From positions 73,594,001 to 73,658,000 of the forward strand of contig CM060731.1 in NCBI GenBank assembly GCA_030704615.1: DNA of 64,000 nt, read 5' to 3'. The stretch comes from Takakia lepidozioides. Lineage: Eukaryota > Plantae > Bryophyta. The notes beneath the pieces are model-generated. The model made no database searches. It was given only the letters and a program-made list of their open reading frames with translations, and had not been told where the DNA came from. This document shows positions 1 through 34,182 of the stretch, in pieces. How positions within the stretch are numbered: the stretch's first letter is position 1; every line of letters starts with the position of its first letter. The translations under genes were made by a program, and so were the position numbers.

Positions 1-61
1 TGAGCTTGGCCTCCCATGTCTTGTTAGCTGCCTCCAGTCATGTCCACTGCCACTATCCCAA

Positions 62-200
62 GCAGTGTGGACACAACCAATCTCCGTCAGGAACCTTATC
101 AAGAGTGGTGTCAAGCATTCCATTTGCCAACCCTTGAGCATCGATCACACACCCGCATGGTGGCTGCCCCTTTGGCAGACCCACAGAGCATGCACCTCAA
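62..200 (-). pseudogene. PHD finger at the C-terminus of the outer Gypsy pol/integrase
   Basis: Manual translation across two 1-nt frameshifts: CMLCGSAKGAATMRVCDRCSR(G)WQMECLTP(P)LDKVPDGDWLCPHC. This is C4-(H>Q)-C3 spacing with the WxCPxC end typical of PHD fingers. Confidence 0.8.
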
Positions 201-8084: not shown

Positions 8085-8815
8085 AGGTCAACACTGGTCC
8101 ACCACAGCCAGCACACAGCCCCACAGATCACTGGTCACAGCCGTCACACAAGCCCCACACACTGCCACAGCCTGTCACAACCCTACACAGGTCACTGGTC
8201 ACAGCCCCACAGGTCGCAGCCTGTCACAGCCCATCACAACCCCAAAGGCCACAGGCACAACCTGTCACACACGCCCTACAAAGGTCACAGGGTCATAGCC
8301 CCAAAGGCCACAGCCTATCACATTCCGTCACAGCCCCACAAGGCCACATCGCACAGCCTGTCACAGCCCCTACACAGTCACAGGGGTCACACCAGCCTCA
8401 AAGGCCACAGCTTGTCACAACCCCTCACAGCCCTCATAGCCCACAGGCCACAGGGCATAGCCTGTCACAAGCCCCTCACAAAGCCCATCCACAGCGTGTC
8501 ACAGCCCGTCAGAGCCCCACGGCCACAGGGCACCCCTGTCACACAGCCCCTCACAAGCCCACCACAGCCTGTCACACACGCCCATCACAGCCCCACAGGC
8601 CACAGGGCAACAAGCCTGTCATAGCTCGCCACAGCCCCTCACAGCCCACCGCCACTGGGCCATAGCCTGTCACAGCCCGCCCACAACCTATACACAGCCC
8701 CTCACAGCCCCATCACAGCATGTACTCCAGCCTCACAGCCCATCACAGCCCCACAGGCCACAGGGCACAGCCTATCACAGCCCGTCACAACAACGCCCCA
8801 CAGCCACTCATTGAC
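8085..8815. repeat. Low-complexity tandem array (cacagccc / gtcacag units) in the leader of the outer Gypsy
   Basis: Dozens of degenerate cacagcc(c/t) and gtcacag units; these create the spurious His/Ser/Pro/Thr/Gln-rich ORFs 7899-8624 and 8027-8665. Confidence 0.85.
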
Positions 8816-11800
8816 AGTTTAGCCATTTCTCCAGGGGTTTAGCCATGCCAAGCTAGGGTTTATGTGTCTCTTGGACCTAGGCTTCTTGCACCGAGCTATC
8901 TATGGCGGCTGTGAAAGAAATCAGCAAGATTTCTTGCTCTTTCGGCTCCCACAACACCACCATAGTAGCCCTATCCATAGGAAGATGGTTGCCACAAACC
9001 AAGCCTTCTTTCTCACTTAGACTCCCCAAACACGCCACTAAACTCAATGACAACAACCAAGCCTTGCTGTTTCCAGCCCTTGTGAGCACTCATTCAGGTG
9101 TTTTCCTTGGCCCTAGCATCTGTCTAGAGCCTATTCCAGCCCCCTACACTTGCCACTTCAAGAGCCATGCTCTATCTAGGCTTGAGGTTTTAAACCCCAC
9201 CTCACATATGCCCTACAAGTGCTTTTCTTTCACCCAATTGGGACCAGCCCTAGCCCTTCCATTCTAGCTCTCTAAAGCTTGAAAACAAAAGCCCATGGAC
9301 TGAAGGCATGCTCCACACATGCCCCACTCTCACCACAAGAGAATCAGCCCCTTTGCTTCATTTCTTGCACCCACCAACCTGAAAACACACGCTTCAGCGG
9401 GCTGGAAGCATGCTCCACACATGCCCTACAGGGAAAACCAGCCCCTTCCTTCCTTTCTTGCACTCCCAACCTGAAAGTACGAGCCTTCAACAGACTGAAG
9501 CATGCTCCACACATGCTTGCTCTCACATAAGGGAAGTCAGCCCTTCCCTCTTCCTTGCTTGCCCTCCAACTTGAAGATGGAAGCTTCAATGTCGCGCACC
9601 TCACTTCGGTAAGCTCCCCCCTCAAGTCATAGTTACTCGCTTGATGCGCGCGCCTAACTCCAACCCTGGCCGCCCGGGCCAACTTGGAGCTCCGACTGCT
9701 CACCGGGGCATAACGGTCCCCCTTTGATCTCCCAAAGAACCCTCCAATGATTTGGAACCAGCGGAATTCCCTTTGGTAGCTGGCAGTCCGGAATAGCTCC
9801 CCACACCTTCCTCGCTTGCCACTGCCCCCACCACAGGGGCAACCCCTCTTGTGTCCTGACCCCCCTGCCCTCAAGGCAAAGGGCCCGACACACACACCCC
9901 TACCAACAGGGAGTCGATGTCCTCATCGGCTTGTCCATTTTGTGGAAACGAACATCCAAGTTGTTGCGTCCCACATCTCCGTACCATGGCGTCCCATGGC
10001 AAAGAACCAAACCCACACTTGACTCTACTCTCCACTAGCTAGTTCGGGCCGACTTCCTCCAAGTCCCGGGCCAAGGGTGGAGCCTCTCAAGCTCCTCCCA
10101 GTGCACTCTTCTTGGCCTACTTCAAGGCCAATGAACGATCCTCCCCGAGGATCGAATCGCCTTACTGCAACAACATTGCTTGCGACCGCTCATGATGCCG
10201 CTTTTGGCATCACCTTGAGCAAGGGTTCACCTCGAACCCTCTTTGACTATGAAGATAACCTTGAACCAACCCGCGCGCCCCAATCATTACAATTGGGTCC
10301 GCCTTGGAATGCTGGCCTTAGGTACGGGAACACGCCGAAGCCGCACTACGACTTCGTCCCGAGGCTACACGATTATAGTACGTGAACGGAAGCACGTAGC
10401 TTCCGCGTTAGCCCGCACTACAAAGCAACCCCCTCGGTAGCGTAGTTATAGTATGCGCACGCGCCAGGTGCGCACTAGCACGTGAACTCCCAAAGAAGGC
10501 GCAAGTTTCCTTGCCCCTTGGATGGGAGTCACCCGATTTCCGGCACTGCGCAACACACACGATTTAACCCAATTTAACCTCTCCCACTTTTGTAAGCTTG
10601 CATGCATTCTACACACTAGCCAACCACACCATGCATCACCATTCCAAACAAAATAGGACGCACAACATTTGGAACCCATTTTCCTTTATAAATAACAAAT
10701 TTTTTGTACAATACAAGTTTTTGCAATCGGATTCCTAAGCTAGTTAAGCCGGGATAAGCATGCATTTCCTCCCCTACGCTCAAGGTTTGATGTCCCCATC
10801 ACGCTTCTTTCCGCTTTTGAGGTCGCCCTTCGAAAACTGCAAACCCGCCTCGGATGCGTTTCCCCATTTCTGAGGCACGCACCCAAGATGCCTCCACAAG
10901 ATGATAGCCCTTCCATTTTGACGAATACTCCGTTTCTCGGTTCTTGACCTCCTCGACTAAAAGTACTGCTCCACTCATACTCATGTTCATTTTCATGATC
11001 TAACAGCACAGGTGGCGGACGCAACACTTGATGCCGATTCGGACGCGCTTCATCTTTGAAGTAAGGCTTCAAAGGGAGACGTGGAATACTGGATGAACCT
11101 TGCTGTTTTGCCGGCAGCTCCAATTCATACACATCCTCATTCATAACCTTCCAGATGCGAAAGGGTCCCGCATACGGAGGTACGAACTTTGGACTCACTT
11201 CCGGAGGTAGTCGGAAATTCTTGATGTTCAACCAGACCTCCGTGCCTGCCTCAACTTCACTTCCCTCCGCTTCCGATTCACCTTGCCTTTCATACCGTTT
11301 CCTAGCTTTGGCAATGTTGTACTTTGCAAGCTTCAACAAACGCTCGCGTTCTTCCAGTACCACCCCGCCGTTACTGCTGGTTCCTCAACGTCCTGGGCGG
11401 CCCACTTGTCGGCACCAGAGGTGCTTTTCCATAGACCAATACGAAAGGGGAAACTCCCGTTGCGGAGTGTTCTGTGTTTTATAACAGAACTCTGCCGCGT
11501 CTAAGTGTTCCACCCAGTCTGTTTGGTCTGCACACGTAATTCCCGCAAGAATTGCTTCACTACGGAATTCACTCTTTCCGTTTGGCCGTCCGTCGTAGGT
11601 CGGAAGGCGGTGCTCATCTTTAGCCTTGTCCCCATCTTCTTCCAAAGTGCCCTCCAAAATTTACTCGTAAACTTTTGATCGCGGTCCGAGACAATATCCT
11701 TCGGACTCCATGATGCTTTAAGACGTGGGCGAAGTAAAGTCGCCCTGTTTCCTGCGCCGTTGCCGTCTCCTTGGTGTGGGATGAAATGGCCCATTTTACT

Positions 11801-12655
11801 GAACCTATCCACCACCACCATGATTGCATCGAATCCTTTTGACAGCGGCATAGCAGTCATGAAATCCATCGAGATGCTTTCCCAAGTCCCCTCTGGAACG
11901 GGCAAGGGTTATAACAGCCCTGCTTGCTTTTTGTACTCGCTCCGGTTTTGTTGGCATGTGGTGCATGTCTTGACATACTCCTCTGCCTCCTCCCTCAGTT
12001 TGGGCCAGAAATACTCTTTCTTCAAGAGTGTCGCAGTGCGCTTGGCTCCGCCGTGGCCCGCAAGCGGGCTATCATGACATTATCTCAAGAGGCTATCTCT
12101 GATCCCTCCCTTAGGCACGTAGAGACACTTTTGCTTATACCGGAGCAGTCCATTTTGCAAATGGAACTGTTATTTAAACCCCATCCTCAGGTCCTGCATC
12201 ACGGACTTCGCCAGCTCATCCTTTCGGCAAGCCTTCCGGATCTTCCTTTGGAGCGCCGTCTCGCCCCTGTACACCAACATAAGCTACTGCTTTCTACTTA
12301 AAGCATCGGCCCACCACGTTGTCATGTCCCGGTTTGTACTGGATATCCACGTCGAACACCGCCAAAGTATCTTGCCACCTAAGTTGTTTGGGGACAACTT
12401 GGGCTGCGTGGCAAAATACTTCACCGTGACATTGTCCGTGAACACCTTCACTGGGTTGGAACCAACATAGTGGCGCCAAAGCTCAAGACAGTGCACCACC
12501 GCCTTCATCTCTTTCTCGTGCGTCGGCCACCGTCGCTCCACTTCATTCAGTTTCTTACTTTCGTAAGCCACTAGACGTCCATCTTGCATCAGTACACCCC
12601 CAATTGCGAAGTCCGACGCATCTGTATGAATCTCGAACGGACGATCGAACTCCAG

Positions 12656-14591
12656 GCCGGCAAACAGTAGGTGCACCCAGTATTCCATGTCTCCCTTTTG
12701 AAGCCTTACTTCAAAGATGAAGCGCGTCCGAATCGGCATCAAATGTTGCGTCCGCCACCTATGCTGTTGGATCATGAAAATGAACCTGAGTACGAGGTGG
12801 AGGCAATACTTAAGTCGATGAGGTTTAGGAACCGAGAAACGGAGTATCTCGTGGAAAGGGCTATCATCATGTGGAGGCATCTTGGGTGCGTGCCTCAGAA
12901 ATGGGAAACGCATCCGAGGCGGTTGCAGCTTTCGAAGGGCGACCACAAAAGCGGAAGAACGTTGATGGGGACATCACCTTGGAGCGTGGGGGAGGAAATG
13001 CATGCTTAGCCCGGTTTAGCTAGCTCAAGAATCCGATTGCAAAAACTTGTATTGTACAAAATTTTGTTATAAAGGAATGGGTTCCAAATATTGTGCGTCC
13101 TATTTGTGTTTGGAATGGTGATGCATGGTGTGGTTGGCTAGTGTGTAGAATGCATGCTAACTTACAAAAGTGGGAGAGGTTAATTGGGTTAATCGTGTGT
13201 TTGCGCAGTGCCGAAATCGGGTGACTCCCATCCAAGGGCAAGGAAACTTGCGCCTTCTTGGGAGTTCACGTGCTAGTGCGTACCTGGCGCGTGCGCGTAC
13301 TATAACTTTGCTACCGAGGGGGTTGCCTGTAGTGCGGGCTACCGCGGAAGCTACGTGCTTCCGTTCACGTACTATAATCGTGTAGCCTCGGGACGAAGTC
13401 GTAGTGCGGCTTCGGTGTGTTCCCGTACTCAGGCCAGCATTCCAAGGCGGACCCAATTGTAGTGATTGGGCGCACGGTTGGTTCAAGGTTATCTTCCTAG
13501 TCAAAGAGGGTTCCAAGTGAACCCTTGCTCAAGGTGATGCCAAAGCGGCATCATGAGCGATCGCAAGCAATGTTGTTGCAGTAATGCGATTCGATCCTCG
13601 GGAGGATCGTTCCTTGGCCTTGAAGTAGGCCAAGAAGAGTGCACTGGGAGGAGCTGGAGAGGCTCCATCCTTGGCTGTGGACTTGGAGGAAGTCGGCCGA
13701 ACTAGCTAGTGGAGAGTAGAGTCAAGTGTGGGGTTTGGTTCTTTGCCATGGGACCCATGGTACGGAACCAAACTCCTTGATGTGGGACGCCACAACTTGG
13801 ATGTTCGTTTCTATAAAATGGACAAGTCGATGAGGACATCGACTCCCTGTTGGTAGGGGTGTGTGTCGCGGCCCTTTGCCTGTGGGCAGGGAGGTCCGGA
13901 CACGAGTGGGGCTGCCCCTGTGGTGGGGGCAGTAGCAGCGATAGGTACGGGGGCTGAAGCACCCTTGAGTGAGTGCCCAAGGCACTCAAGGAGACGGAGG
14001 CGCTCACTAGGTGGAGCCCCGCACACCGGGTTGCGGTGGGGGTGGCTCCACAAGGGGTGGTGGTAGCTTAGTGGGACTTAGTGGGGTGGCATAGGACTCA
14101 CCATGGGGGTGGAGACCTCGTGTGGGAGTCGTGGGGAGTCTTTGGGACTCATCACGGTCCATAAGGGCCGTGGTGAGCGGGGCCAAGACTCACCGCGACT
14201 CACCACCGGGAATCGAGGGTCTTCGTGGTTGTTCGCCATAAAATGGCTGGCTGGTTGTGAAACCCCGCGGACAGCTACAGAAAAGTATATGTAGGGAGTA
14301 GTAACCCCAGAAACGGTGCAAGCCCGTTGGTGACCAAAACTAGTGAGTAAGCTAGCTGGCCCGAAAGCGACCAAAAGAGTGGGGAGCTGTTCCGACTGCC
14401 ATCTACTCAAGGGAATTCTCCTAGTCCCAATTAGGTGAGGGTTTTAGAGGGAAGCGAAGGGGACCGTTATGTCCCGGTGAGCAGCCGAATCTCCAAGTTG
14501 GCCCGGCGGCCAGGTTGGGAGTCAGGCGCGCGCATCAAAGCGAGAGTAACTATGACTTGAAGGGGAGTTTACCGAAGTGAGGTGCGCGACA
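12656..14591 (+). mobile_element. Inverted 3' part of a related chromovirus (integrase end + chromodomain, 3' UTR, longer LTR 13864-14591)
   Basis: HPVFHVSLLKPY...EYEVEAILK..R.R..EYLV chromodomain on +; sequence mirrors 9590-11120; the LTR starts TGTCGCGG at 13864, ends GCGCGACA at 14591 and has an extra ~400 bp internal segment. Confidence 0.85.
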
Positions 14592-14660
14592 GCTTTTGCT
14601 TTGGCTTGCCCGACCCCATGATGAGGCCAATCCCAAGGACGATCGCGTACTGAACTCTAA

Positions 14661-14972
14661 GCTCTGATACCAAGTGTCGTGCACCTCACTTCGGTAAGCT
14701 CCCCCCTCAAGTCATAGTTACTCGCTTGATGCGTGCGCCTAACTCCCAACCTGGCCGCCCGGGCCAACTTGGAGCTCCGACTCGCTCACGGGGCATCAAC
14801 GGTCCCCTTTGATCTCCCAAAGAACCCTCCAACGATTTGGAACTAGCGAATTCCCTTTGGTAGTTGGCAGTCCGGAACAGCTCCCCACACCTATCGCTGC
14901 CACTGCCCCCACCACAGGGGCAGCCCCTCTTGTGTCCCGACCCCCCTGCCCTCAAGGCAAAGGGCCGCGACA
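14661..14972 (-). repeat. 5' LTR (14675-14972) plus tRNA-iMet primer-binding site (14661-14672) of the nested Gypsy
   Basis: gctctgatacca is the reverse complement of TGGTATCAGAGC and lies 2 nt from the LTR end; the LTR is a close copy of 9590-9890. Confidence 0.9.
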
Positions 14973-17900
14973 TTCAATGAGCTGAATACATGCTCCACAC
15001 ATGCAACCTCTTCACACAAGAGGTATCAGGCCCCTATCTTGGCTCCTTGGCTCATTGATGCTCTCTAAGACAAGACTAAGCACTCCACAGCCTTTGCCAA
15101 GCTCCTGAAACCCTAAGGCTTATAATTCCAGCCACAAGACACTCCTTTTGTGGTGCAAGAGCTCTTCTTCCAAGCTCTGAAACCCTAGGTGCACATTCCA
15201 TTGTCTTTCCGCACCTCTAGCTCCTGTTCCTGCCCTACTCTTGCCCATGACAAGAAGCCCTCTCAATGCTGAAGCTCGAGATTGAAAACCCAATCCAACA
15301 TACTCCACAAAGTGCACTGCAGCATGGTGCTTTCATCTCTGAGCTCAAGATCAAATGCCAAGGTCTACCACCTCGTAACCCACATCGCCTCCGCTTCTAA
15401 CAACCAAGAGCTCCACGGTGCTCCTTGCATAACAACCTGGTTTCTCTTATTCTCAAGCAAAAACCACAAGTGCTACAACTAACTCGTATCTGGCACTCAC
15501 AGATACGAGCTGATCTTTCTCGAGTGATAAAGAAGAAGAATACAAGCACAAGCTCATGCGAGCTCACAAAGCTGAAGCATAAACTCATGCATATATAAAC
15601 TCATCACTCCAATACAAGTCAAGCCAAGTGCACCCCACGCCGTGGGGAATCCACACTACGGCGCCATAGCTAGGCGCGGCGAGGCTCAACTCGAGAAAGA
15701 TGAGCCTCCCGCGCTTGCCATGAAGATAAACCACTCCAGGGCCTAAATCTACCTTGATGACCCCTGGATTGACACTTGGGCCAATCCCAAATGTCAATAT
15801 GTAAAAACTAGCTATTTCCTAGCTAGTTTCACACTAGTGGTAAAATAACTTGTCATCCTCCTTGTCTGGAGTAATGATGGTCTGATGGGATATATTTGAG
15901 GAGATGTTGTGACGTGAACCTAGCCCAGTCACAGTCAACTTGGGTGGGGGGTTTATGTGCGCCATTGAAGGTATGGCCAAGGAGTGCAATGTCCTATTGA
16001 AGTCTCCTGCTAATATGATATGATATTGTTGATGGTCGGGATTGGTAATTGTTTTGGATATGGTGTTTAGGATTTCAGGTATAAGCGGTAGGTCCTCTAC
16101 ATGGGATGGCATATACATGTGAATGAGAAGAATAGGTCGTAGAGCCGATGGGTGTAGATGAACGATCTGGAGGTGGATCAAAGATGAATGGGCCGAGTAA
16201 TTTTAGTGGTGGTGCTTGTTGAGTGATGTGAACGCAAGATGCCGAATGCCACACCCCCCCTGGTGGTGTTGTAGGGTGCGGAGCGTCTGAGGAGGCATTG
16301 TGGGGCGGTGAGGGGGTTACTGTATAAGAGGTAGTAGTCTGGGAGGAGTTTGCTTATATAGGAGCTGTTAGTGTTACTGGTGTGTAGCTTGGTTTCTTGT
16401 AACAGTATGATGTGAGGGGCGGAGTCCTTAAGGAGGTGGATGAGGCTCTGGATACTGGTAGCAAGAGAGCCGATATTCCAGGAGGTGATGATGAGTGAGT
16501 TGGTGCTAGTTGCGGATATAGGGACAAGAGCGGTTGTGTGCTAGGTTTTGTATGGGTGTAGGTGGTCTTTGGGGGGGGGGTGGGGTGGGGGGGGGGTATT
16601 GTAGTTATGGGTGTGGGGCGAATCCCGAGAGAGGGGAGAAATGGCCTTTAGTGTGGCAGCTAGATGTCTTTGGAGAGGAAGGGGAAATTTGTGAGTGGTT
16701 TCGATAAGGTCTAGGTCGGTAGTGGTTATGGTAGCAAGGTGGTTGCCTAGAATTTTATGTACGGCGTCGGATTGGGAGTGCAACAGATTGAGAGATGAGT
16801 GAAGTGTGGATAGATGGTGTGGTGGGGCCAAATAGTTGTGGGGGAGCGGTGGCAAGCTTTTCAATTGTTGGAAAAATGGGGCGTATTTGGGATTAGAGTG
16901 GGAGTGACGAATAACCGTACATGTATCCGACAGAGGTGAAATGATGATTATAAAGAGAAGATAAGGTGGGGTCTTCGGAAGGGCTTTGAGTTTTTGGCAA
17001 GGCTTTAGAAGTGCTGGGTGACGGCTAGGGGGGAGTCCAAATGTTGAAATATGGTGCGTGGGTGCATGTTTAGTAGGTGGGTCTTGCGGGAAGAAGGGTA
17101 TGAAGTGGTCGAAGATTTGGCGGTAGTTGGGCATCAGTGACATGGTGTCTGGCTGAAAGTAAAGTGTATATCTGTCTTGTGCATCTGTGGGAAGTTCCCG
17201 GATAATCTTGTTGATAAGAGGAGGACCGGGGTTTGGGTGTATGTCGCCACATCTTAATAATCAACAGGGATTAAGCAAGTGTTTAAAGTAGAAGGTATTG
17301 ATGCCGGGGGGGGGGGGGGAGGGGGGTGGGTGGTAGTGTTTAGATTTCCCTAATGTAGTTGATATCGGCCATTTGGGCTATGAGTGGTGAGGCGGGGATG
17401 GTGATATATATAGTGGAGTATCTTGAGGTGTTGAGGGCAGTCGTAGGGTGGCGTGGCCTTTTGTGCGAAGAAATGGTGGGGAAGATCAGAAGACGTAGTG
17501 GCAGCTTGTAACAAGTGAGTAGATAGGGGAGTTATATTTGGCAAAGCGTGTTTGGAGAATAATATAGTGCAGGTTATAAGATGGGGGAGGGGCCTGAAGT
17601 GGGTGATGAGCAGGTTCGGTTGGAGAGGATGAAGTCCGTTCATCCTGTGGTAATGGTGGGTAGGGTGGCGTGTAGGGGTTGTATTTGGATGTAGCGAACG
17701 GGATGAAACAGGATAAAAGTCCCTGTGGATGAATGAGGTGTCGGTTACATGATGATAACATACGTGATAGTGTGACATATGGGGGTATGCCATATGCCCA
17801 GATACTTAGGCCGGGCGAGTTGACCACTGTTGGATGAAGTATGCGCTGTGGATGATATACTGGAGGGTGGCAAATAATTATGTAGTGGGTATGGAGTGTG

Positions 17901-18224
17901 ATGGGGGTGTTTTGTGCATAGCGTATGGGTTGGGGGAAGTTGGCGTATTGTGGGTAGGGTATATTTCGCGGGTAGTTGCACCTGGTGAGTAAAAGCAGAT
18001 ATGCATGTCATACGTATTATGAGCTGGAGAAAAATTGCGTGGGTCGCTCTGTAAAATCATGACTTGGGGAGAGAAATATGGCCCGGTATGGATACGTACA
18101 TTCTGTGTAAAAAGCGTGAGTAGATCATTGTGTGAAAATATCTGAGCTGAGTAGTAGAGGTGTGGGAATACCCCCCCCCCCCAGAGAACGAGTAGTTCCG
18201 AATAGTTTGTGAAGACAGAGCTGC

Positions 18225-18350
18225 TTCCCAAGGATACATTTTTTCAAGGTAGCATTTTCCGAAGGTAGCATTTTTCCCAGGTAACAATTTGCCAGGGTAA
18301 CATTTTCCCAAGGTAGCATTTTCCCAAGGTAACTTTTTCCCAAGGTAGCC
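18225..18350. repeat. ~16-bp minisatellite (ccaaggtagcattttc-like, ~8 copies)
   Basis: Repeated aaggta(g/a)cattttccc units; explains the GKCY/GKML repeats in overlapping ORFs. Confidence 0.85.
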
Positions 18351-19224
18351 AGTATCTCAGAATATCTTGTAGTAAAAAAGAGCACGAGTTGGGAATCAGT
18401 GGTCTCATAGAGAACCAACGATTCTGAGTAGCTTGAGAAAGAGAAATAGAAAGTGGTAAGTGTTTTGTATTTGGGAGACAGCATGTGAAGGAGTATTGCA
18501 GGTTATAATGAGTAGACCACTGTACAAAAAAGATATTGGAATTGGAGTCAGAGTATGGTTGAGTGCCACAAACATAGTGAATTTGTACAAGAATTAGAGG
18601 ATGCATCGTACTCAGGTGGCTAGAAATGGAAGCCAGCGGATGTAATGTCATGTAGCAGGGAAGTGTGGTGACACGAAGACTATATGGGCATAAGTATTAT
18701 TTTGAGAAATAACTGAAGAAGCAAGGACAAGTATATCGGAGGTGGCTGCTGTAAGGTGGTGGGGGAGAACAGATATATTCTTTGAGGGGTGTCGGATAAT
18801 TGAAACCAGTAGACAGTACATTGCAGATAGGAGTATACAGTTATAGAGTGGAGGAAACCGTTCCTGAGGCTAAGCATCGTGTGAGTTAGCTGGAGTGGCC
18901 GCAGGTCTAATTGATCGATTGGGAGCTCAAGTTGACAAGTATCAGTGTGTTGGGAAGTCCAGTCTTTGTCCAGTGCATGTTCCTGGGGTTTAAGTAGCTG
19001 AGCCTGCATGGGTAGGATGCGCCAAAGGTAACAATTTGGTAAGCTCACTGCAATCAGCCATAGATCATTGAAAGGCAACATAGTAGCAAGCCAGTATGGT
19101 CTTGTTGCGAAATTACTAGAGAGAGCCAGACACAAATGAGGGGAAGGATAGGAGGGTTCCCTGTAGATCACAAATCTTAGGAGTGACAAGGGGTAAAGAT
19201 CCAGCGACGCCGGTTGGCAGTGCT

Positions 19225-19980
19225 CAGCATGTTCAGCTATCCTTGAACTCCATGAGACCACCACTCGATTAATCGATTCGACAAACAATTGGCTTGAATC
19301 ATTCAAGCTCCCGCATTTGGCAATCATGGCAGAAAGGGAACTCGGGGGCAGAACTAGGCAGAAGTGGTTCCCTGCAATCACACTGGCAGGGTTGGCATTG
19401 TGGAAAGAGTGCCACTCATGCGTCCTCTGAGAACTATATGTGCTGATTGCGGTAGTGGTAGTGAGGATGGGGAAGTCGAGTTGCCGGGGAAGTAGATGGC
19501 TGGTCGTTTTACTGCAATTTTGGTCATTTCATGAACTTCAGCTGTGACCCAAATGAACTGCTTGCAGCCCGTCCAGCATGTTGTCAATCCTGCCCTAACC
19601 AAGTACAGTTTATGCCTGTCTATAATAGTGACCAGCTGCTTACATACATCCTGAGCCCTATTCAACAACTGTGACTGCACAGAATTCTTAAAACACCATG
19701 GACCTGGGGAGTTGTTGGCTGGGAACAGGGTGCAGCCGGGCATACAGAGCATGTGGACAAGGGCGTTCTCCACAGCCATATCTGACTTAAATTCAGCTTT
19801 GATGGTGTCCAAATTGCTCCATTTACAATATTCCAGAGCTGCTGGACTGGCACATGCGCCGAGGGTACTAATAAGAGTGACCTTATCTGCCTTCATGCCT
19901 TCTCTTTGTATTTGCCAAAAGAGTTCGAAAGCACCATCATTATGAACATGCAGACCACATTCTGCAATCATCTTGATAAA
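19225..19980 (-). pseudogene. PLS-class pentatricopeptide repeat (PPR) gene fragment split in two pieces
   Basis: AFELFWQIQREGMKADKVTLISTLGACASPAALE..SDMAVENALVHM (~19980-19745) and MIAKCGSLNDSSQLF..NRVVVSWSSRIAEHAEH (~19330-19225) match consecutive plant PPR P/L/S motifs. Confidence 0.8.
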
Positions 19981-22783
19981 CAAGATAGAGATAGGGGGAG
20001 GCCTCTCTAGAGAGGGGCGGTGAGATTGATACCTATGTTGAAAATTATCCAGGTACCTCTGGAGAAAGAGCAGCAAAACTTGTCCGGGGAGGTCTGTGTT
20101 GATGCAATCAGCAGCAAGGTCGAACAGCGTTGGCGCGATCGCGTATAGTCGCTCCACAGAGTGATAAAGGGTCTGCTTGTGGTGCTTAAGAGAAAGCATG
20201 GTGCATACACAGCTTGAAGCACTGTCAGCTCTTACCTTGTAAGAGAGCTGGAAGCTTTTAATCGGTGGGTGGTTTCTCAGGAGCAGGAACAGCTGAGGGG
20301 TCGAGCAGCCGGGGCACCTGTGCACCAGGAGCCTGTCAGCAATCTCGAGAAGACAATTGCTGCCTTGACGTCGTCCGATCTGTTGAGGGCCCGACATGGT
20401 GGGACTCGCAGTTCTTGTTGAGGTGCGTCCATGGGGGTAAGGTGCCTTGCCAAAGTGCCAGAGGTCCGAGTAGCATGTAGCGCACTTAGGGGGGGAACCC
20501 AGGTGTGCGGAATTGCTTCCAAAGGGGTTGAGCACCACGCGGCTGCTTCTTTTGCAAGGTATGAGGGGTGTATTTGGTGCGGATCTTCATTTTCCTGTAA
20601 AGGGGGAGGTTGTTGAAGAATTGCCAAAATCGCCGGCAGCAGCGATTCAGCGATTCAGCTTCTTCGGCAGACCAAGGTCTGTGCATGCTGATCTTCCGCG
20701 CAGCCCAGTAATCAGCTCCTGGAGCAGACAACAGTGGTCTAGTGTTCGATTGTACCCATGCAGCAACTCCGAATACTCCAGCGAGTTTGCGCAGCTGGTT
20801 CCCAGCTTGGGGCAGAGAGAGGTTTGAGAGGTCCAAGGTTCGGCCATCGCGGTTGGGATATACTGCAGGTACACATCAGGGCCTTTGAAATGATGCGTTG
20901 ATGGAGCAAGCTCGACCATCGGTTGTTTTAGTTGCCTAAAGTTGTCTTGCGAGTTGTTCAGAGCAGACAGAACAAACTTATTAGCCATTTTGCGACTCGC
21001 CATAAGTGAGGCATTGTACCTGTAGAGCGAAGCAGCTGCGAGATACGCCATGGAGACGGTTGTGTATGAAGAAGAACTCCAGAAAGACATGGCGTTTCCT
21101 TTTGCGAGAGAGAGAGCCTACTGACATTGTACCGGTCCAATCTTGGAGCCAAAAAGAGCGAGAGGGGCGTTGGAAGAAGCGTATTGTCATGACGCTGGTG
21201 AGCAGGGTGTTGGGAAAGGAGGGGAGGTGGCCAGGGCGGGCGAGGTGGCCGGGCCAAGGGCGCATATGAGAGACTAGGAGCAGGAGCAGTTGGGGCATAA
21301 GCGTGCGCCGCCGGCGCGATAACTGTAGCCAAAGTAGCGGAAATGCTAAATATAATATTAAGAAAGACACTAAAAGTAAACATATAGCGGAATCCTAAGG
21401 ATTTAGTCATAGATAAAGACTTAGTAGAGAAAACTGTGGGAGAGCGGAGCTCCGGCCCCCAAGAAGTCTACAATGGTGGTTGTGTAGTGTATTAGGGCCT
21501 CTGACCATTTAGCATTAGGATTAGCACATGTTGGTTCATCTATTACCAAAGTGTGGTCCTATGAGGTTCAGAAAATATCCAATCTTTTTAGGTGTCTCAC
21601 CATGAGCTTTACGACATCCATGAAAGGTCCCTATGAGTCATGAGAATAGTTAGGTCATCGTTTGATTTGTCTATTACCATAGTGTGGTCCTCTAAAGTTT
21701 AGAAAGTATCCAATTTTTTCTGTTGACGTGGGAGCCACTGTTTAGTACTCCTAGAAGCTTCATGTTTAGGCCCGTCCGAGCTTGAGTCGAGACCCTAGCA
21801 TTTTACAATGAGCTGTGCAAATCCATGAGAGGTGCCTACAAGCCATGTCAGAAGTAGTATAGAATCAAAGTTCTTCCAAGGCTGTAATAGAGTAGGATCA
21901 TCAAATTGCACCGCGCTTCTCGCTCTTGCATCGTCTAGGGGATTCAAACCCAGTCCGGTGGGGAAGAATGGTGGTTTTGAAGTATTTTTTATCTGGGAAT
22001 TCCAACTCTCTCCGAAGAGGGTGAGTCGGGTGGTTTTGAAGTATTTTTTGGCTTTTTGCTTTTATTTTTTCCCTCTCTCCCGGAAGACTTGAAGTGACTC
22101 TCCGAAGAAGGAGAGCCGAAGGGAAATTACTGATCTTCATCTTTTTCATGTCATTTAAGAAAGTCGTTGACTCCAAGGGATATCAGTGATACCCTAGTAG
22201 GGAGAATGTGTGAACCAGAGATTCTAAGTTCTTTTACACTCGGGGTGAGTGTTCCCCATTGGTCGTCATATATGTAGATGCATGTATTGGTACAAAATTC
22301 TTTTCAGATCGTTTTTTATCTTAAGGCAGACAGTTTAGGTATTATACCGCCAAAGCAGGGCAGTTTGCGAGTTATCTGGGAACCGCTGGTAAAGCACGTA
22401 GGAACTTAGATCATGTCTGAGACGACCATGGAGAAGCTCTGGCGTCAAAATGACTGTAGGGCGCTGCATCGACAGCGAATTAGGCTGCCAATTTGGTACC
22501 TGTAACGACAACATGCATCTGTTCGAAACAATACATGACCACTGTTCCAGTCCCGGATTGCGATCTCTCTATTCTCCTGCCTTTCAAGTCCAGTAGGAGC
22601 ACACGGCGAGGAGTCTTGGCAATTGGAGGAAACAATCTGTATAGCGATGAAATATCGCGACAAAGCAAGTGCTGCATCGGAGCAAACGACGGATGAAGTA
22701 GCTTCCCGACGAAGTTTTTGAACTGCTCAGCGATCCAAAGTGTGTAGGAGGGAACTCCAAAATATCTGTGACCTAGTGGCAGG

Positions 22784-26600: not shown

Positions 26601-28112
26601 AAGGCGTGACTCATGACTGTGGTTTTTAAGCAATCCTTGAAAATTCAAAATTTTCATGTTGAATTTATTGTTAATACTGCATATAATATAATCATCAATA
26701 TATTATTTCCATATTTATTAATCATTTAATATTATTGATCAAATGTCCAGATTTCATGTTTATGTCCATATTTACTTAAAACTGAGTTATATGTTTCTAT
26801 GTCTCCATGCTAGATATTTTTAAAGTGTTGGGTGGTTAACCAGACTCGCCCCATTTAACCACCGGTTCTGGCTCCCTAGGATCTTTTTTTAGCCTCTAAG
26901 GGGATTATAACTGGCCTTCTTCCAAATGCCAATGCTTGGTGGAACAAGACCACCGAGGATTCCCAAGGTGCAAGTTGTCCTTTTGTCTTCTTTTTGTCTT
27001 AAGTGTTTCATACTTAGCACCAAGGTAAGCTGCAACGTGCAATTGCATCTTTTATCATGGATATTGTTTGTTGATAACGACCAAACAAACTAAGCGCCTC
27101 TGTTACATAGTTCACTACTTTCTTATGCAAGTTAAGTCAGTCTACATATTTGACCTATATGGGAGTCTGTGTACGCTATGTACAAACAAATGTCAACAAA
27201 TGTCAATTGAATATGTCTTATGCAATGGAAACTGCTTTCAAATATATCACTAGTTAAGAAAATGATTGAGGATGAGGACAAATGTTTTAAATAATTTCTT
27301 ACAATATATAAGGACTTTGTCAAAGTGGCTCTAATTAGTTATGCCAACCTCGGCTTGGGTCTTTTCTCTCTTTTCTCTCTATATAACCTGGATCCATTTT
27401 GAAAAAATATGTATGTTCTTTATTACTCAGTGATTGCATCACAACCTCAGGTATTATTAACTAAGCTGCTCTTCTTCTCCCAATACTAGTCTCGCATGTA
27501 GTGTAAGATTGTACAACTCATCATATTTCACGATGTTGACATGCATTTTGATTTTGGACCGTCATCTTGTTACAATAACTAGAAGAATTTAAGTTTGGTT
27601 GTTTATATGCTTTTGTCTGTTCAACCTTTTTATGTTATTTGTCTCATCATTTGTTTTCTCAATGAAGGTGTTTTTCCTCATTCTTTGTAGACTATGCTAT
27701 GTTAGCTACCTCTGCCGATTATGTTATTGGGTACCTAGTTATGTATGCATATTTTTCACGCGGTACGTTGTTGTACCCATTGCTAGGGAATGGCTCTTGA
27801 CTACCTTGACGTTGTCTAAACTCATGGTCCCCAAAATACACAGTCGTGTTTTTCTCCTCGCTCTAAGGATATCTTAGAGCGGCTCTGAGATATTCACATT
27901 TGTTCAATCTAGGCTCCCTAGGGCCTTGCAACAACAACTAGGGCTTGTCCCTATGATTCAGTCCTTAGCACATGCACATGTCTTGAAGACGCAAATATAT
28001 ACATCAACAACTAGATGTAGCTCTTGTAGTCTGATTTTTCACCTATGTTGTTGGATACATGCAGTTCAATCGGAGTACTTGTTTTTTCATGTCAAATCAC
28101 CTTGGAGTTGCT

Positions 28113-31100
28113 ATGATGAACATTATATTGTCTCGACACTACATTGAAGCTTATTTTTTTGCATTACTAGTACTAAATGGGTTGTGTATTACAAGTAAGG
28201 TATATGGGGCCCATATTGATTTACGAGCTGAAGATGTTTTGCACATCAAAGTGAAGACCCTACATGATGCAGGAGTTAAAGGGGGTTTAACAGTGGTAAC
28301 CCGTCTGAATTCATCATTATTGGACACACCAACACCATCATATTTTTGGGGTGCTATACCAGCACATGCTGTAAATGTGATTTGCAAGAGGATCAACGGC
28401 GGGAATGATATCATCCCTATATCCATCACTGCCTATGGTGCAACAAAGAGACATACTCTTCAGGTACAGTTCAACTAATGTCAATATTAAATAATAACCA
28501 AGTAGCCAATATGGTATAATATCAGTTGTGGGTTCAAAACCACATAAGTGTGTTGGATGTCGTAAAAGTGTCCACCTTCCCATTGGAATTTGAAGGCAGT
28601 ATAAGGGCCGCTTTACACTAGGGCCCAAGCCCAAGACCAAGTGAGAATGGAGCATTCCCATTGGCAGAGGCCTGAAAATTGGGCCCAACGGCTTTACACT
28701 ACGGTCCGAGCCCAAGAAAATGGAAGTGGGTCATTTGCCTACATGGCACAAGTTTTGGCACCAACTTCTTGGGCTGGACCAAGAAAAAAAAACCCTCCTA
28801 CAATGGAGACCCAACTCTCAGCTCTTGGGCCCAAGAAGTTTGGTATTAAAATAGACTATTTTTGTGCGATCATGACTGTTTGATCATGACCGTTGAAGTT
28901 GGCCCAAGACCAGCCCAAGAGTTGTAGAAATTGGGCCCAGGATTTCTTGGGCTTGGGCTCTAGTGTAAAGCGGCCCTAAGTCATTTGGGTGAAGTAAGAC
29001 CATAAGTTATATTTGCCAACAAAGAGTCATTTTTTATTTTATTTTTCAACTATATTTAAATGGCCATATCCATATATGAGGGATAACCTCATATGATTAC
29101 ATCTTTGGATTTTGGATATCCTCATTTGTATCATTTTTGTTAATGGAATAAACAATTCAAATCTAGATAAGTCAATCAAGAGCAAAATAATAAATTATTT
29201 ACATATGTAATTAACGCACTCTTTTTAGTTTCAAGCCTTGTGATCTTCGATGGGCTTGTTTTGTGAAGCCTAGCATGAACATGAACATTGTCAAGATATA
29301 ATAAGGAGGATTTTGAGTATCCCACATATGTATGTACATGTAGGTATTATCTTCAAAAGGATGTGATTCATCTAGTAAACCACCAGAGGGAGTGGAGGCC
29401 GTCTTCTCTGATGAAGCAGGACATAAGAGCGTTGTGAGTCATTTTTTCCCAACCAACATATACGCTTACATCTAATTTATTAACATTATTGTATCCTCTT
29501 ATAATATATAGCTTTGTCATTAATATTGTTGATCGTCCACTATTTGTTGATCACATTTTATCAATCTATTTACAGAACTGGTAATGCACCCAAAAAGGTG
29601 AATGTCATTTTCGTCAATGAAACAAAATATGATGGACCTCTTGTTGTGCGTTGTTTCCAAACCCAACAATATCATTCATTTGACATCGTCTTTTTTTTAT
29701 ATCTCTATATTTTTAGTTTTTTTTTGTTTCGGCTTTCTCACATGAATTATTTTAAACTATAATTTCCTGTAATTACTAAACAATGTCTTTGTCTCAATGT
29801 TCTTTATGCAACTTTGTGTACTAGTTTGTAAATAAGATGAATGTATGGACATTTTGTCCAATTTTTATGTCGAAACCCTACATGTTACGCTCATGAATAT
29901 TTTGACAAATTTTCATTGTATTTAGTGGCATAAAAGTTGAGCAATTCATATTGTGTGTGTGTGTGTGTGTGTGTAGATATTACAATGATATACTTGAGCT
30001 CGTCTACTTGAGATATATGTGCTAGACGTTCATTTGTATACAAAAGTAATGCGTGAAGTACTAATGATTTTGTGTTTTTACACAGCTACTATGTCACAAA
30101 TCAAATCATACACACACATGCGGGTGTGCCATGCATATGATAGGCAAGAAAGCAAATGCCATCGTTAGTCAATATGAGGGTGGCAACTATATTCATGGTG
30201 TTAATCCTATGCACTCCATGACTGCGTCTATTGGAAATCGTAGGCTACTTGATGTACCAACATGTGTAACCACTGGAGCAACTGCGGGTACTATTTTCAC
30301 TAAGTTCATTGTAACTTGATAGGATAAAATATCAGTTAGCAAAATTTCCCACTTCCTTTCAAGGATTTTAAAATCCAAACAAGTCTCTTTGCAAAACACT
30401 ACAGCCTAGTATATTTAGTATGACCTTTGAACTAGAGTGGATAGCCTTGTGGTTGGGTCTTACCATATTTGTGCTTTGCTTGTACATAACCTAGGTGATC
30501 TAGGGTTCAAAGTGTCCATCTTTCATGCAGTAGTATTCCTTTGGGTTGAAAAGACAAGTGTTAAACTTATGCTTCATTAGGGAGGAGTCAGCCTGGTTAC
30601 TCCTACTAGATATATATATATATACACATGAACACAAACATATGTTGTTTTTGTAGGTTAGCACAATATCCTTCAAAGTTCACAATATATAAAGTCTCGT
30701 CAAACATGAAGTTGTTGGGGCATTTTACTCCAATATGCTTTTGAGAAGCAACTATCATCATGAAATATTAATATTGCGTAAGTTATATACTTTGGATCGT
30801 ACAATTCGGTGGGTTCTTGTAATTAGAGAGGTTTGGCCAACCACGTTGCTCCGGTTGCAGCCGTTGGAAGGTTTTTACCTCCCAATACAAAAGTAGTAGC
30901 ACTTCAGGGAGAAGTGACATCATACATGAGGAGAGAGAGAGAGAGGACTCTGGCCAAAGCTAGCTTAACTAAGAGCCCTTTCACCTTGCTTTTATTACCT
31001 CCTATAATAAAAGGCTCTATGAGATAAATGATAGTACCAAGCAACACTATAAATTAGACCTACTTCAGTATAAGTCTTCCTCTTAATAACAATATTGTCT

Positions 31101-32895
31101 TGTAGGTTATATTATAGTTTTAATATTTCTAGTACAGCTCTCAAACTCTATTCTAACATATTTATTTAATTTGTTTGTACTGTGAACAGCTGGGATAGCA
31201 GCTGGTGCAATAGTGATTTATAACATAGCTGCTTTCACGGCCTCTTGTATGATGCTTGGACCAATAGCCTTTCCAATATGTCTGGTGGCTGTCTTTGCTG
31301 CGTCTGGAATTGCATTTGCAGGACCGTTTATTATTGCAGCTTGCGCTGCTAGTTGCTTCCCAGGTATATTTGATGTTTTTTATTCCTTTGCATCCATCAA
31401 TATATATTCAACATCACTTTTCTATTGGAAATAGTGGAAAAAAAAAGAATTAACGAGATCGAATATTCACATGATGCATAGTAACAATATTAAAAATAAA
31501 ATAAGACTCTTGTGGTCGAAGCAGCGTAACTTATATGTCCCTCGAGCCTAAATGGCTGTTGAATTTTATAGTAGCTCTTCGAAGCACCATAATTTATGTC
31601 TGTTTTGGCAGTCCAGTCCAGTCTTCTTCCTCCTCCTCGCTAGGCCTCATCTTTCGCATTGCTTATCCTCAATGTGGTCAAGCTTTCATATCTAGAGCAT
31701 TTTCTTTCTAAGGATATTGTAATCAGGATGCATTATTTCTGCAGGTGACGCATTAGTTACATTGCCAACAGGATTGCAGAAGCCCATGTGGGAACTCACT
31801 GTTGGAGACCAAGTATGTCATCTACCCAAACACATGCAATTAATGTAACATGTAATTTATTGTATATATATATATTCTGAATCCAAACATGAAAATGTAT
31901 AGGTATAACATGGAAGTGTAAAACTTGTATCATCGGACTTGGAATTATTGCTGTTTTATTTGACTTGTAAGAAATATTTTGCTTTCAGGTAGCGGTGATG
32001 AAAGTAGATGGGCGCATGACATTTGATGAAGTCTACGCCTTTGGTCATAATGATGCTCACACTATGGCGTTCTTTGTGAAGCTCACTCTACAACCCGTTG
32101 GCGTCAGTGGTGATGACTATGTTGTGAAAACGCTTGAGCTTAGTGCTCGTCATTTTGCTCCCGTCTCTCCAGGTATTGATCACAAGAGTAGGTTGTCCAA
32201 GCTCATTGAAATTGTCTTTAAGATATTTAATCTTTGGTTTCAATGCTTGATGTTCCCATTCAAGCTTATTTCAATTGACATTATATTCCCAATTCCACAA
32301 ATTTGTCAAGATTGTTGAAGACTTTATGTCTTCTTCCAAATGCGCAAACTCCAATTACATTGAGAATGGCAAATCAGTGGGCTTTCTGCAATCAATCCCA
32401 TTTTTTTTTCATTGGCTTGTTGAATATGCTTCTTACTTTTTTAGTTTATTTTCCAGAGTAATTTTCTGCCCCCCAAGTTTTTCGAATGTAGCTCCACTTG
32501 AAAGACTATATGAATGATCACATGACTATATTAAGTCTAAGGGCAAGTAATCTTCCGTAAATTTTTGATAAAGATTAAGCATCCAATAGATGACCCAATT
32601 GTTAGGGTACAAGGCTGCCTCACAAATGGTCATGGGTTCGAAGCCACATAGGTATATGTTGGACGTCACCTATTACAGCCAACCCATCTATAAAATGGGG
32701 GTCGTTGGGTCAACTGGACACCTGATATGTAGATACTTAGGAACTGTCGAGTCAAGTTGGGGAGGTTTGAGTAACCATGTTGCCCTAATAGTTACGGCCA
32801 TTATAAGGTTTCTATCTTCCAAATGGAAGGCAGTAGCCCTTTGGGTTGACGGTGATATCATGTAGGTTTTGTTCAAGTTTTGGAAAGACCCCCCC

Positions 32896-32932
<37 letters not shown>

Positions 32933-34182
32933 GGCCACAACCATGAATTGACTTAGGCATGCATCTTCTTGATCAGCTCCTTATCTTGTCTTTAGTAAGT
33001 TATCTAGATCTATGCAGGTTCTTTCTTATTATTAAACTTGTTCACTAACTCATTAGTACGCACATTACTTGCACATTACAAACAAACATAGAATGTGTCA
33101 ATTATAATTAGTAACAATCATTATGTTATTTGTTTTTACCCAGGGATGAATGGCAAGAAGGTATACAAACGAGCTAAGGACATTCACATAGGCGACTACA
33201 TGTGGGTCAACTTAAATGGCGACAACACTGATCTTGAGCAGCTCATTGTGATAGGTTTGATTACAATCTCACATTAATTTTACCTTTAAATGCCTCAAGT
33301 ATGTGTTGTTGACAAATTTGGGCCACAAGAGGGCTACAAAATTTTATGTAATTACCTGCACCAAGACTTGAGGGTCACTTCTTCAAATATATCTGATATA
33401 TATATTAGGATGCTCACATATCTCTATATACAAAACCAAAAAAGTCTAGTCATTTTTCAAACAAGAATACTAAAATTGAGAGAGAAAATAACGGAACATT
33501 AATACGTGACAGATTCGGTGGTGACGGTCAAGGCGGGGTTGTACAACCCCTTCACATTGAATGGCAACATAGTTGTGGGCGATGTGGTGGCATCCGTGCA
33601 TAGCGATTGGTTCCTTGATGACATGTTTGACACTATTGCAATCACCCATTGGCTTCCTGCAACTTATCAGGTATATTGGTTTTAAGCTTTAATGTGTTCA
33701 TTGTGGATCAGAGAAGCATCTAGATCGTAAATTGATTTTCTTTTTCTTTTTCCATGGTTACACCTATCAAGAAATTCCCTAATTGTCCTAATTGTCTAGT
33801 GTGACCTCCCAAAATAAGCAAAATTATGGTATCTCTTGACCCCAAAGGGCTATGACCTTCCAATAGAAAGGTGAACAGCTTCAGCCCAGTATTGTCCAGT
33901 ACTTTAAACGTTCGGGCTTCATAAATCTTATTTTTGACTTTGGTTGTTTTGTTACATGAACAATGGCAGATGGTGTTGGCTCCAGTGCGGATGCTCTACC
34001 GTGTACTATCAAGAGATGCATACATCAAACTTTACCACTTTTTGGATATCCATTTGGATTTTCCCCAATTGGGCACTCTCTATGGTGGGAAGGTTGTGGC
34101 TACCATGGCTGCTTCAACACTATCCGCATTATTTGTTCGAAGCTTCTTCATTTTGAAAAAATATTCTTTAACGTTTAAATAG
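28113..34182 (+). CDS. Secreted Hedgehog-type Hint (Hog) domain precursor, 9 exons, ~516 aa (524 aa if ATG 28089 is used)
   Basis: Manual exons, all GT-AG and phase-compatible with no internal stop: 28113-28463, 29344-29433, 30086-30287, 31190-31363, 31745-31812, 31989-32172, 33144-33254, 33513-33670, 33970-34182. Hint motifs: S|CFPGDALVTLPTGLQKPMWELTVGDQV, FDEVYAFGH, LELSARHF, AKDIHIGDYMW, GLYNPFTLNGNIVVGDVVASVHS. SRR-like LAPVRMLY. N-terminal hydrophobic signal (YFFALLVLNGLCITSKVYG). Exons 4-9 are strongly supported; exons 1-3 are moderately supported. Confidence 0.85.
28605..28976. mobile_element. PIF/Harbinger (Tourist-like) MITE in intron 1 of the Hog gene
   Basis: ~32-bp TIR GGGCCGCTTTACACTAGGGCCCAAGCCCAAGA ... 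TCTTGGGCTTGGGCTCTAGTGTAAAGCGGCCC; TAA TSD on both sides. Confidence 0.9.

Follow-up and report, generated by a model that had tools for sequence, protein, structure and literature searches.

Animal Hedgehog is made as a secreted precursor that is cut at a small residue before a Cys-Phe pair by a Hint domain followed by a helical sterol-recognition region, and to our knowledge it is so far the only well-characterised protein to be modified covalently with cholesterol by its own Hint domain. Hog proteins with a plant-specific conserved upstream region have been reported from Physcomitrella and Selaginella (Burglin 2008, PMC2362128). The present analysis concerns a relative of these proteins in Takakia lepidozioides, encoded on the + strand at 28113-34182 of a 64,000-nucleotide stretch of contig CM060731.1 (assembly GCA_030704615.1, positions 73,594,001 to 73,658,000; hereafter the window, meaning the whole stretch, from whose first letter all positions are counted). 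The gene is present and expressed, and its product combines a conserved N-terminal domain (N-domain), a conserved motif of the site-1 protease (S1P) type, RRLL, a hydrophobic module framed by four cysteines, and a Hint domain with most of the Hint catalytic residues. The architecture described below is highly probable. Judged from sequence, there is about an even chance that the hydrophobic segment is the last cargo module of a green-lineage Hog protein and is matured in two steps, by Hint self-cleavage on one side and a subtilase cut on the other.

The window protein shares with the plant and moss Hog proteins of Burglin 2008 a probable signal peptide, a conserved upstream region and a Hog part that has motifs J and K, the cysteine of motif J being replaced. 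The relatives found here, too, are from the lineages of those proteins, namely lycophytes, mosses, ferns and green algae. That work describes no RRxL site, four-Cys glycine-zipper hairpin or maturation scheme, in a comparison made by description and not by alignment. No later work on plant or algal Hog proteins was found in the literature, nor any description of the bracketed four-Cys hairpin, the conserved S1P-type site or an invariant His at the position of Hedgehog Asp46 (His46). An earlier note on this DNA, made from the sequence without database searches, had proposed a ribosomal lipopeptide pathway that it did not know to have been described in plants; the cargo layout is indeed absent from the literature found, but as a family plant Hog proteins have been known since 2008 (PMC2362128). 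Relative to animal Hedgehog, the protein likewise has the features of a secreted precursor, with a small residue before Cys-Phe at the expected cut and a helical sterol-recognition-like region after the Hint domain, but its cargo is unrelated to the Hedge domain, His takes the place of the general-base Asp46 (as in the engineered D46H form), Val takes the place of C143, and an extra hydrophobic tail is present at the C-terminus.

The other candidate cleavage site has counterparts among the substrates of S1P/SBT6.1, which include RALF23, CLEL6/GLV1, pectin methylesterases and bZIP17/28 (PMC7162652). As in those pro-proteins, the motif lies in a variable region upstream of the putative mature part of a secretory-pathway protein; unlike the window protein, none of them has a Hint domain, and for the window protein cleavage is read from conservation of the motif.

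For the module itself, two kinds of hairpin offer a comparison. Plant alpha-hairpinins and bacterial glycocins such as sublancin are small secreted or membrane-active helix-loop-helix peptides with two nested disulfides, cut from larger precursors. The window module could likewise form two antiparallel helices stapled by C1-C4 and C2-C3 bonds; however, its spacing of 27/11/21, with one Cys per helix end, departs from the alpha-hairpinin pattern CX3C-Xn-CX3C, it is far more hydrophobic and Gly/Ala-rich than either group, and no sequence relation was found with Pfam. The oleosin hairpin with its proline knot resembles the module in having about 60 uncharged residues and a Pro turn in the middle, but the window module has a lumenal or secretory context and conserved cysteines, and the modules of its homologues are not uniformly hydrophobic. 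Assignment to oleosin (PF01277) was rejected, as the Pfam match scored 11.4 bits (E=0.28) where the cut-off is 25, and the homologue modules gave no match.

The gene model comprises nine exons with an open frame of 516 codons and GT..AG ends at all eight introns, and all conserved family positions are retained in the family alignment. Transcript evidence comes from X1, one public run whose kind is guessed and whose contigs are spliced, lying on exons and skipping introns at GT..AG ends. X1 contigs span five of the eight introns (exon joints 1-2, 2-3, 4-5, 6-7 and 7-8): a contig over 28063-28461 joins exon 1 to exon 2 (28461/3 -> 29342/4), exon 2 continues into exon 3 at 29433 -> 30086, and the peptide exon is spliced to the first Hint exon at 31363 -> 31745. 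Exon 9 lies outside the listed transcript contigs. A short open reading frame at 29577-29598 was considered as an exon and ruled out, as the transcripts pass directly from 29433 to 30086. The hydrophobic N-terminal stretch resembles a signal peptide, a reading made by eye and from the family alignment. The joined 516-residue model was used for coordinates, hydropathy and local MAFFT alignment; database and fold searches used single exons or homologues, among them P0007 (locus L001), an annotated paralogue from Diphasiastrum complanatum. The features of the gene, with the evidence for each, are as follows.

28113..28463, + strand: exon 1, with the start codon, the probable signal peptide and the first part of the conserved N-domain (open reading frame, gene model, X1 contig, phmmer family match)
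~28113-28208, + strand: probable signal peptide, judged by eye
29344..29433, + strand: exon 2, N-domain with the conserved motif GC-D-SSS-PPEGVEAV (transcript joints, family alignment)
30086..30287, + strand: exon 3, which completes the N-domain and carries the variable linker, RRLL and 12 residues of the peptide, up to and beyond Cys1 (contig over 30086-30184, donor GT at 30288)
30239..30250, + strand: RRLL, candidate S1P/SBT6.1-type subtilase site 8 residues before Cys1 (motif kept in 10/12 family members)
30263-30265, + strand: Cys1, in exon 3
30288..31189, + strand: intron 3, 902 nt, GT..AG, with dispersed-repeat fragments inside
31190..31363, + strand: exon 4, remainder of the hydrophobic peptide followed by the catalytic Cys of Hint (gene model, X1 contig over 31197-31363, alignments)
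31246-31248, + strand: Cys2, in exon 4
31258-31275, + strand: GPIAFP turn, in exon 4
31279-31281, + strand: Cys3, in exon 4
31342-31344, + strand: Cys4, in exon 4
31745..31812, + strand: exon 5, start of Hint (G-DALVTLPTGLQKPMWELTVGDQ) (transcript joint, weak single-exon Pfam Hint match, alignment to Hedgehog structure 1AT0 via P0007)
31989..32172, + strand: exon 6, Hint, with His at the Hedgehog D46 position and the S-A-R-H motif (gene model, transcript, alignments)
33144..33254, + strand: exon 7, Hint (transcript joints 32172->33144 and 33254->33513)
33513..33670, + strand: exon 8, Hint motif GLYNPFTL..VASVHSDWFLD and the start of an adduct- or sterol-recognition-like region (Pfam Hint E=3.3e-05, transcript)
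33970..34182, + strand: exon 9, helical C-terminal region equivalent to the sterol-recognition region (SRR) or adduct-recognition region (ARR), hydrophobic tail at ~34096-34164, stop codon (gene model, family alignment)

X1 differs from the window at 8/399 positions in exon 1 and at none in exons 3, 6 and 7. At 31255 the X1 contig has T where the window has C, so that the peptide there reads ..MMF.. in place of ..MML.., with one hydrophobic residue (Phe) conservatively replacing another (Leu). These mismatches indicate that the run represents a different allele, a different accession or a near relative. The first 117 nt of X1 contig record 1 (707 nt) fall outside 28000-33800, which may reflect an upstream exon of the 5' untranslated region before 28000 or diverged 5' ends.

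The exon 1 phmmer search of 1.8 billion representatives returned three relatives, and word-index searches added more. Among 8000 candidates, a homologue search with P0003 recovered only the query, and a search with alignment A1 added one moss protein. The family set of twelve sequences comprises the window protein, three from Diphasiastrum complanatum, two from Adiantum (two fern species), one from Ceratodon, two transcript-derived sequences, one from Coccomyxa and two from Volvox africanus. The nearest proteins are those of the lycophyte Diphasiastrum complanatum, whose three copies are ~52% identical to the window protein, with exon DNA 68-81% identical. The family shares one layout: a hydrophobic N-terminus, a conserved N-domain of ~130 residues, a variable linker, the four-Cys module, Cys-Phe-Pro with the Hint domain, and a helical region. 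Identity between the window protein and the three Diphasiastrum copies differs by region.

Module: 22-27%
N-domain: 42-55%
Hint: 66-71%

The module is the fastest-evolving part of the protein, and the N-domain can be aligned from Volvox to ferns. Most members also carry a hydrophobic tail at the C-terminus (34096-34164 in exon 9 of the window gene), ending hydrophobic and then basic; the tail is strongest in P0007, P0008 and P0009 and weaker in the window copy and Volvox. A tail of this kind suggests that the Hog part may stay membrane-anchored after self-cleavage.

RRLL (residues 199-202) fits the published preference of AtSBT6.1/S1P for R-(R/K)-X-L or R-(R/K)-L-X (PMC7162652). A motif of this type lies 6-25 residues upstream of Cys1 in 10/12 members, against 0.11/12 expected from shuffling each protein, in a set of only twelve sequences that are related by descent, so that neither these counts nor those of the cysteines are independent. 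In the window protein and the three Diphasiastrum copies the motif stands exactly at -8 from Cys1, in two moss-like sequences it occurs twice, and it is almost absent from the remainder of the family proteins. The linker around it is unconserved and often Gly-rich, with predicted local distance difference test (pLDDT) values below 50 in the P0007 model, where the motif reads KRRL. Whether a subtilase cuts at RRLL is about evenly balanced on these comparisons, leaning if anything toward cleavage. In the Volvox africanus proteins P0014 and P0016, a Cys-rich insert occupies ~residues 195-225 where other members have RRxL, with a weak match to ShK (Pfam E=0.11).

Downstream of RRLL, a segment of 67 residues (203-269) is encoded by 30251-30287 and 31190-31353 once the intron at 30288-31189 is removed. 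Its composition is A19 I9 G6 V5 T5 F5 P4 C4, the sole charged residue is the first Asp, the cysteines fall at peptide positions 5, 32, 43 and 64, and 19-residue Kyte-Doolittle means run from 1.6 to 2.2 along it. The CFPG Cys that starts the Hint domain (residue 270, 31354-31356) follows directly. The nine-exon translation confirms these elements as the earlier note had described them: RRLL, the segment of 67 residues with one charge and Cys at 5/32/43/64, the GPIAFP turn and the adjoining CFP.

The cysteine frame precedes the Hint Cys in 12/12 members as C1-x18..27-C2-x7..15-C3-x16..21-C4-x4..10-Hint Cys, with a spacing of 27/11/21 in the window copy and 27/11-15/21 across the window and three Diphasiastrum copies. 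Hydrophobicity is unevenly kept: past the first Asp the window module is uncharged, as are those of Volvox and Coccomyxa, one fern module has a single charge, and the annotated Diphasiastrum copies have 6-11. The turn LGPxAPxC is common to the window copy, Volvox, Coccomyxa and moss, and is lost from the Diphasiastrum copies. The uncharged module together with this algal-type turn makes the window copy look like the ancestral form. Compared with shuffled sequences, the 24 inter-Cys stretches have an excess of small residues (G/A/S) spaced at lag 4 (z=4.2) and at lag 8 (z=2.0), values that are inflated by the relatedness of the sequences. The lag-4 recurrence is a glycine-zipper-type pattern and fits two tightly packed helices. 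The module appears to be a unit of 63-67 residues, rich in small residues, with two glycine-zipper-like helices, a Pro turn and a Cys at each helix end. The earlier note had proposed to test whether RRLL, the cysteine spacing and the hydrophobicity are kept while the peptide diversifies; the RRxL-type motif (10/12), the Cys frame (12/12) and the divergence of the peptide (22-27% identity) agree with this, but hydrophobicity is uneven and the Cys spacing varies.

In Pfam scans of all window exons and of cargo or module pieces from six homologues, neither the N-domain nor the module could be assigned to a family, and the only matches in these regions were insignificant ones to Oleosin, Lipocalin_7 and ShK. 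ESM Atlas searches with the P0007 cargo and window exon 4 returned no usable match. The structure models are of the homologues P0007 and P0009. The AF2 model of P0007, from a 20-row alignment, places helices at 202-214, 218-232 and 241-270, with Cys 203, 230, 244 and 265 at helix ends. From the helix lengths in this model, we infer that the cysteines would pair in a nested fashion, C1-C4 and C2-C3. A fold search with the N-domain model gave a best Z of 4.1 (VIA wide) and a best template-modelling (TM) score of <=0.41 (Atlas), with no convincing neighbour.

The Hint domain is the only part that Pfam recognises. Searched exon by exon, the window protein matches Hint (PF01079) with E=3.3e-05 and 24.0 bits in exon 8, below the Pfam cut-off of 29.7; the paralogue P0007 matches with E=2.4e-23. 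The best matches of the P0007 AF2 model in the PDB are the Hedgehog structures 1AT0 and 6TYY, with a TM score of 0.94-0.95, a root-mean-square deviation of 1.6 A and 28% identity. The catalytic Cys, C1 of Hint, is invariant across the family. An S/TxxH motif is present in all 11 aligned members and aligns with Hedgehog TPAH (T69/H72); in the window protein it reads S-A-R-H (32142-32153), with a conservative Ser for Thr. The Hedgehog D46 position is His in all family members (window codon 32046-32048, His315). Drosophila and Sonic Hedgehog with D46H still process and accept a wider range of sterols (PMC8529194, PMC12054796), which makes a lipid-alcohol nucleophile plausible here. After Hint, a conserved HWLP..YQ..L.P.R.LY stretch followed by helices in the P0007 model forms a helical region of the adduct-recognition type. 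By this comparison, Hint cleavage is fairly probable, and a sterol or other lipid adduct is a tentative and somewhat unlikely addition to it.

On the preferred reading, the precursor would run from the signal peptide through the N-domain of ~130 residues, the linker ending in RRLL, the module and the Hint domain to the helical region and hydrophobic tail. In the endoplasmic reticulum, Hint Cys270 would attack the Ser269-Cys270 bond to give a thioester, which a nucleophile under activation from His315 would then resolve. This nucleophile is plausibly a sterol or another lipid alcohol, and otherwise water; the cargo would leave with its C-terminus modified. The cut after RRLL would follow in the Golgi, made by a subtilase of the S1P/SBT6.1 kind and separating the N-domain from a membrane-seeking hairpin of ~67 residues, probably stapled by the disulfides C1-C4 and C2-C3.

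Several observations weigh against this maturation scheme. Both cuts are plausible on evidence that is wholly comparative; the RRLL of the earlier note, taken there as a subtilase site, agrees with the published preference and recurs in 10/12 members, with cleavage itself read from that conservation. The joint of exons 3 and 4 (30287 -> 31190), which that note presupposed, is spanned by no listed contig, as contigs stop at 30184 and resume at 31197. It has good, indirect support from canonical splice sites, the open frame and the matching intron of P0007, whose site (Cys1+8 codons) and phase (1) are the same; both proteins also space Cys1 and Cys2 by 27. Both Volvox proteins lack an S1P-type motif upstream of Cys1. 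The helical hairpin of the earlier note appears in the models at low confidence only: module pLDDT is 50-66 in the P0007 model and below 40 in the AF2 model of the fern cargo P0009, which is uninformative on the hairpin (its N-domain reaches 70-89). Val fills the Hedgehog C143 position of the window protein (33596-33598); most relatives have Thr there, and Volvox alone has Cys. In animal Hedgehog, C143 forms a branched thioester and is required for processing (PMC12054796), and replacement of the motif-J Cys in moss and red-algal Hog domains was already noted by Burglin 2008 (PMC2362128). With C143 replaced, the plant enzymes would either skip the branched intermediate or be less active, which is the main caveat on a C-terminal adduct, and processing may be different, slower or absent. 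Finally, conservation is higher in the N-domain than in the peptide, so that the main product may be something other than the peptide; this also makes doubtful the earlier proposal that the pro-domain is a mere solubility chaperone. A complex prediction for the P0007 N-domain and module, made without alignments, scored 0.00 and gives no verdict, speaking neither for nor against the chaperone idea.

The relative conservation of N-domain and hairpin bears most directly on a serious rival, to which a rather low probability is given, in which both cuts occur, the N-domain is the functional secreted product and the lipidated hairpin is a leftover membrane tether, cut off at RRLL much as S1P cleaves bZIP17/28 at luminal sites beside their membrane anchors. 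It accounts for the N-domain being 42-55% identical between the window and Diphasiastrum copies against 22-27% for the hairpin, and for an N-domain alignable from Volvox to ferns; AtSBT6.1 is known to cut membrane-anchored bZIP factors in the Golgi (PMC7162652), and the hydrophobicity of the window hairpin would suffice for it to lie within a membrane or on its surface. A simple tether, however, would need neither the strict four-Cys frame nor the lag-4 periodicity, and the N-domain has no fold or family recognisable by Pfam or fold searches, hence no assignable function. An equally low probability attaches to a single cut by Hint, in which RRLL would be kept for folding, sorting or interaction and the cargo would remain intact, with the hairpin, beside the scissile bond, as a membrane-proximal stalk, an oligomerisation module or a lipid-presenting module. 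The Volvox members, which keep the hairpin without the motif, are in line with this, as is the derivation of subtilase cleavage from motif conservation, and the glycine-zipper-type periodicity would suit helix packing or oligomerisation. Against a single cut, the linker around the motif is unconserved, Gly-rich and modelled at low confidence, and two sequences carry the motif twice; both features are typical of processing sites and not of structural elements.

Membrane insertion was assessed with the Hessa biological hydrophobicity scale, using the best 19-residue windows. In the window copy the first stretch gives +2.1 kcal/mol and the second a borderline +0.4 kcal/mol, while the modules of the Diphasiastrum paralogues give +4 to +5.7 kcal/mol. 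On these predicted energies the family does not have two insertion-competent segments throughout, as a transmembrane hairpin would need. It is quite improbable that the protein escapes processing, with a catalytically dead Hint and with its two hydrophobic stretches spanning the membrane of the endoplasmic reticulum as an ordinary transmembrane hairpin; the earlier note had set transmembrane helices of an uncleaved protein against its own proposal. Kyte-Doolittle means up to 2.2, the borderline second stretch and Val at the Hedgehog C143 position are in keeping with it for the window copy, but the 6-11 charged residues and the energies of the paralogue modules leave no membrane span there, the first window stretch is itself unfavourable, and the Hint C1, SxxH and His46 are invariant. 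Cys2 and Cys3, near the turn, would moreover face the reducing cytosol in a transmembrane hairpin, yet all four cysteines are conserved, which favours a lumenal, disulfide-stapled hairpin. A lumenal, membrane-seeking stapled hairpin thus seems likelier than a classical anchor with two spans, less clearly so for the window copy. Repeat fragments in introns 1 and 3 could be taken as signs of a decaying or non-functional copy whose odd composition is meaningless; with the frame intact over nine exons, canonical splice sites, spliced transcripts and the conserved family positions retained, this is very improbable indeed.

Under the preferred two-step reading, the gene offers a concrete green-lineage cargo, a small Cys-framed glycine-zipper hairpin between two conserved putative cleavage sites, and the natural His at the general-base position corresponds to the change that broadens sterol tolerance in Hedgehog. 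If both cuts and a lipid adduct were true, this would be a new maturation route for plant peptide biology and would place Hedgehog-type lipidation in the common ancestor of green plants. The fullest version, in which non-seed plants and green algae make ribosomal lipopeptides through a Hog domain that esterifies the C-terminus of a disulfide-stapled glycine-zipper hairpin with a sterol or another lipid alcohol and an S1P-type subtilase that frees the hairpin from the N-domain, is considered unlikely as a whole. Were it true, the lipopeptide would act on membranes or in signalling and diversify, and no lipid-modified ligand of the Hedgehog style would have been known before it outside animals. 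An antimicrobial or pore-forming role is pure speculation, with which the glycine-zipper pattern is compatible without proving anything.

Around the exons, pieces of introns 1, 3 and 6 (28525-28983, 30328-30521, 30910-31103 and 32656-32849) show 90-95% identity to unrelated contigs, on both strands and in both runs. These contigs run on into unlike sequence, and the pieces are probably fragments of dispersed repeats or transposons with transcription at other sites. Introns 2 and 3 contain short microsatellites (GT, TA and GA runs) at 29953-29975, 30606-30622 and 30925-30940. The region 1-20000 is quite unlike the AT-rich gene region: its GC content is higher, at 0.47-0.55, and its strands are strongly asymmetric, with a GC skew of -0.21 to -0.28 over 1-12000 and +0.39 over 16001-20000. 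Tandem repeats rich in C and A lie there at 8166-8611 and 9345-9516, their units 75-94 nt long.

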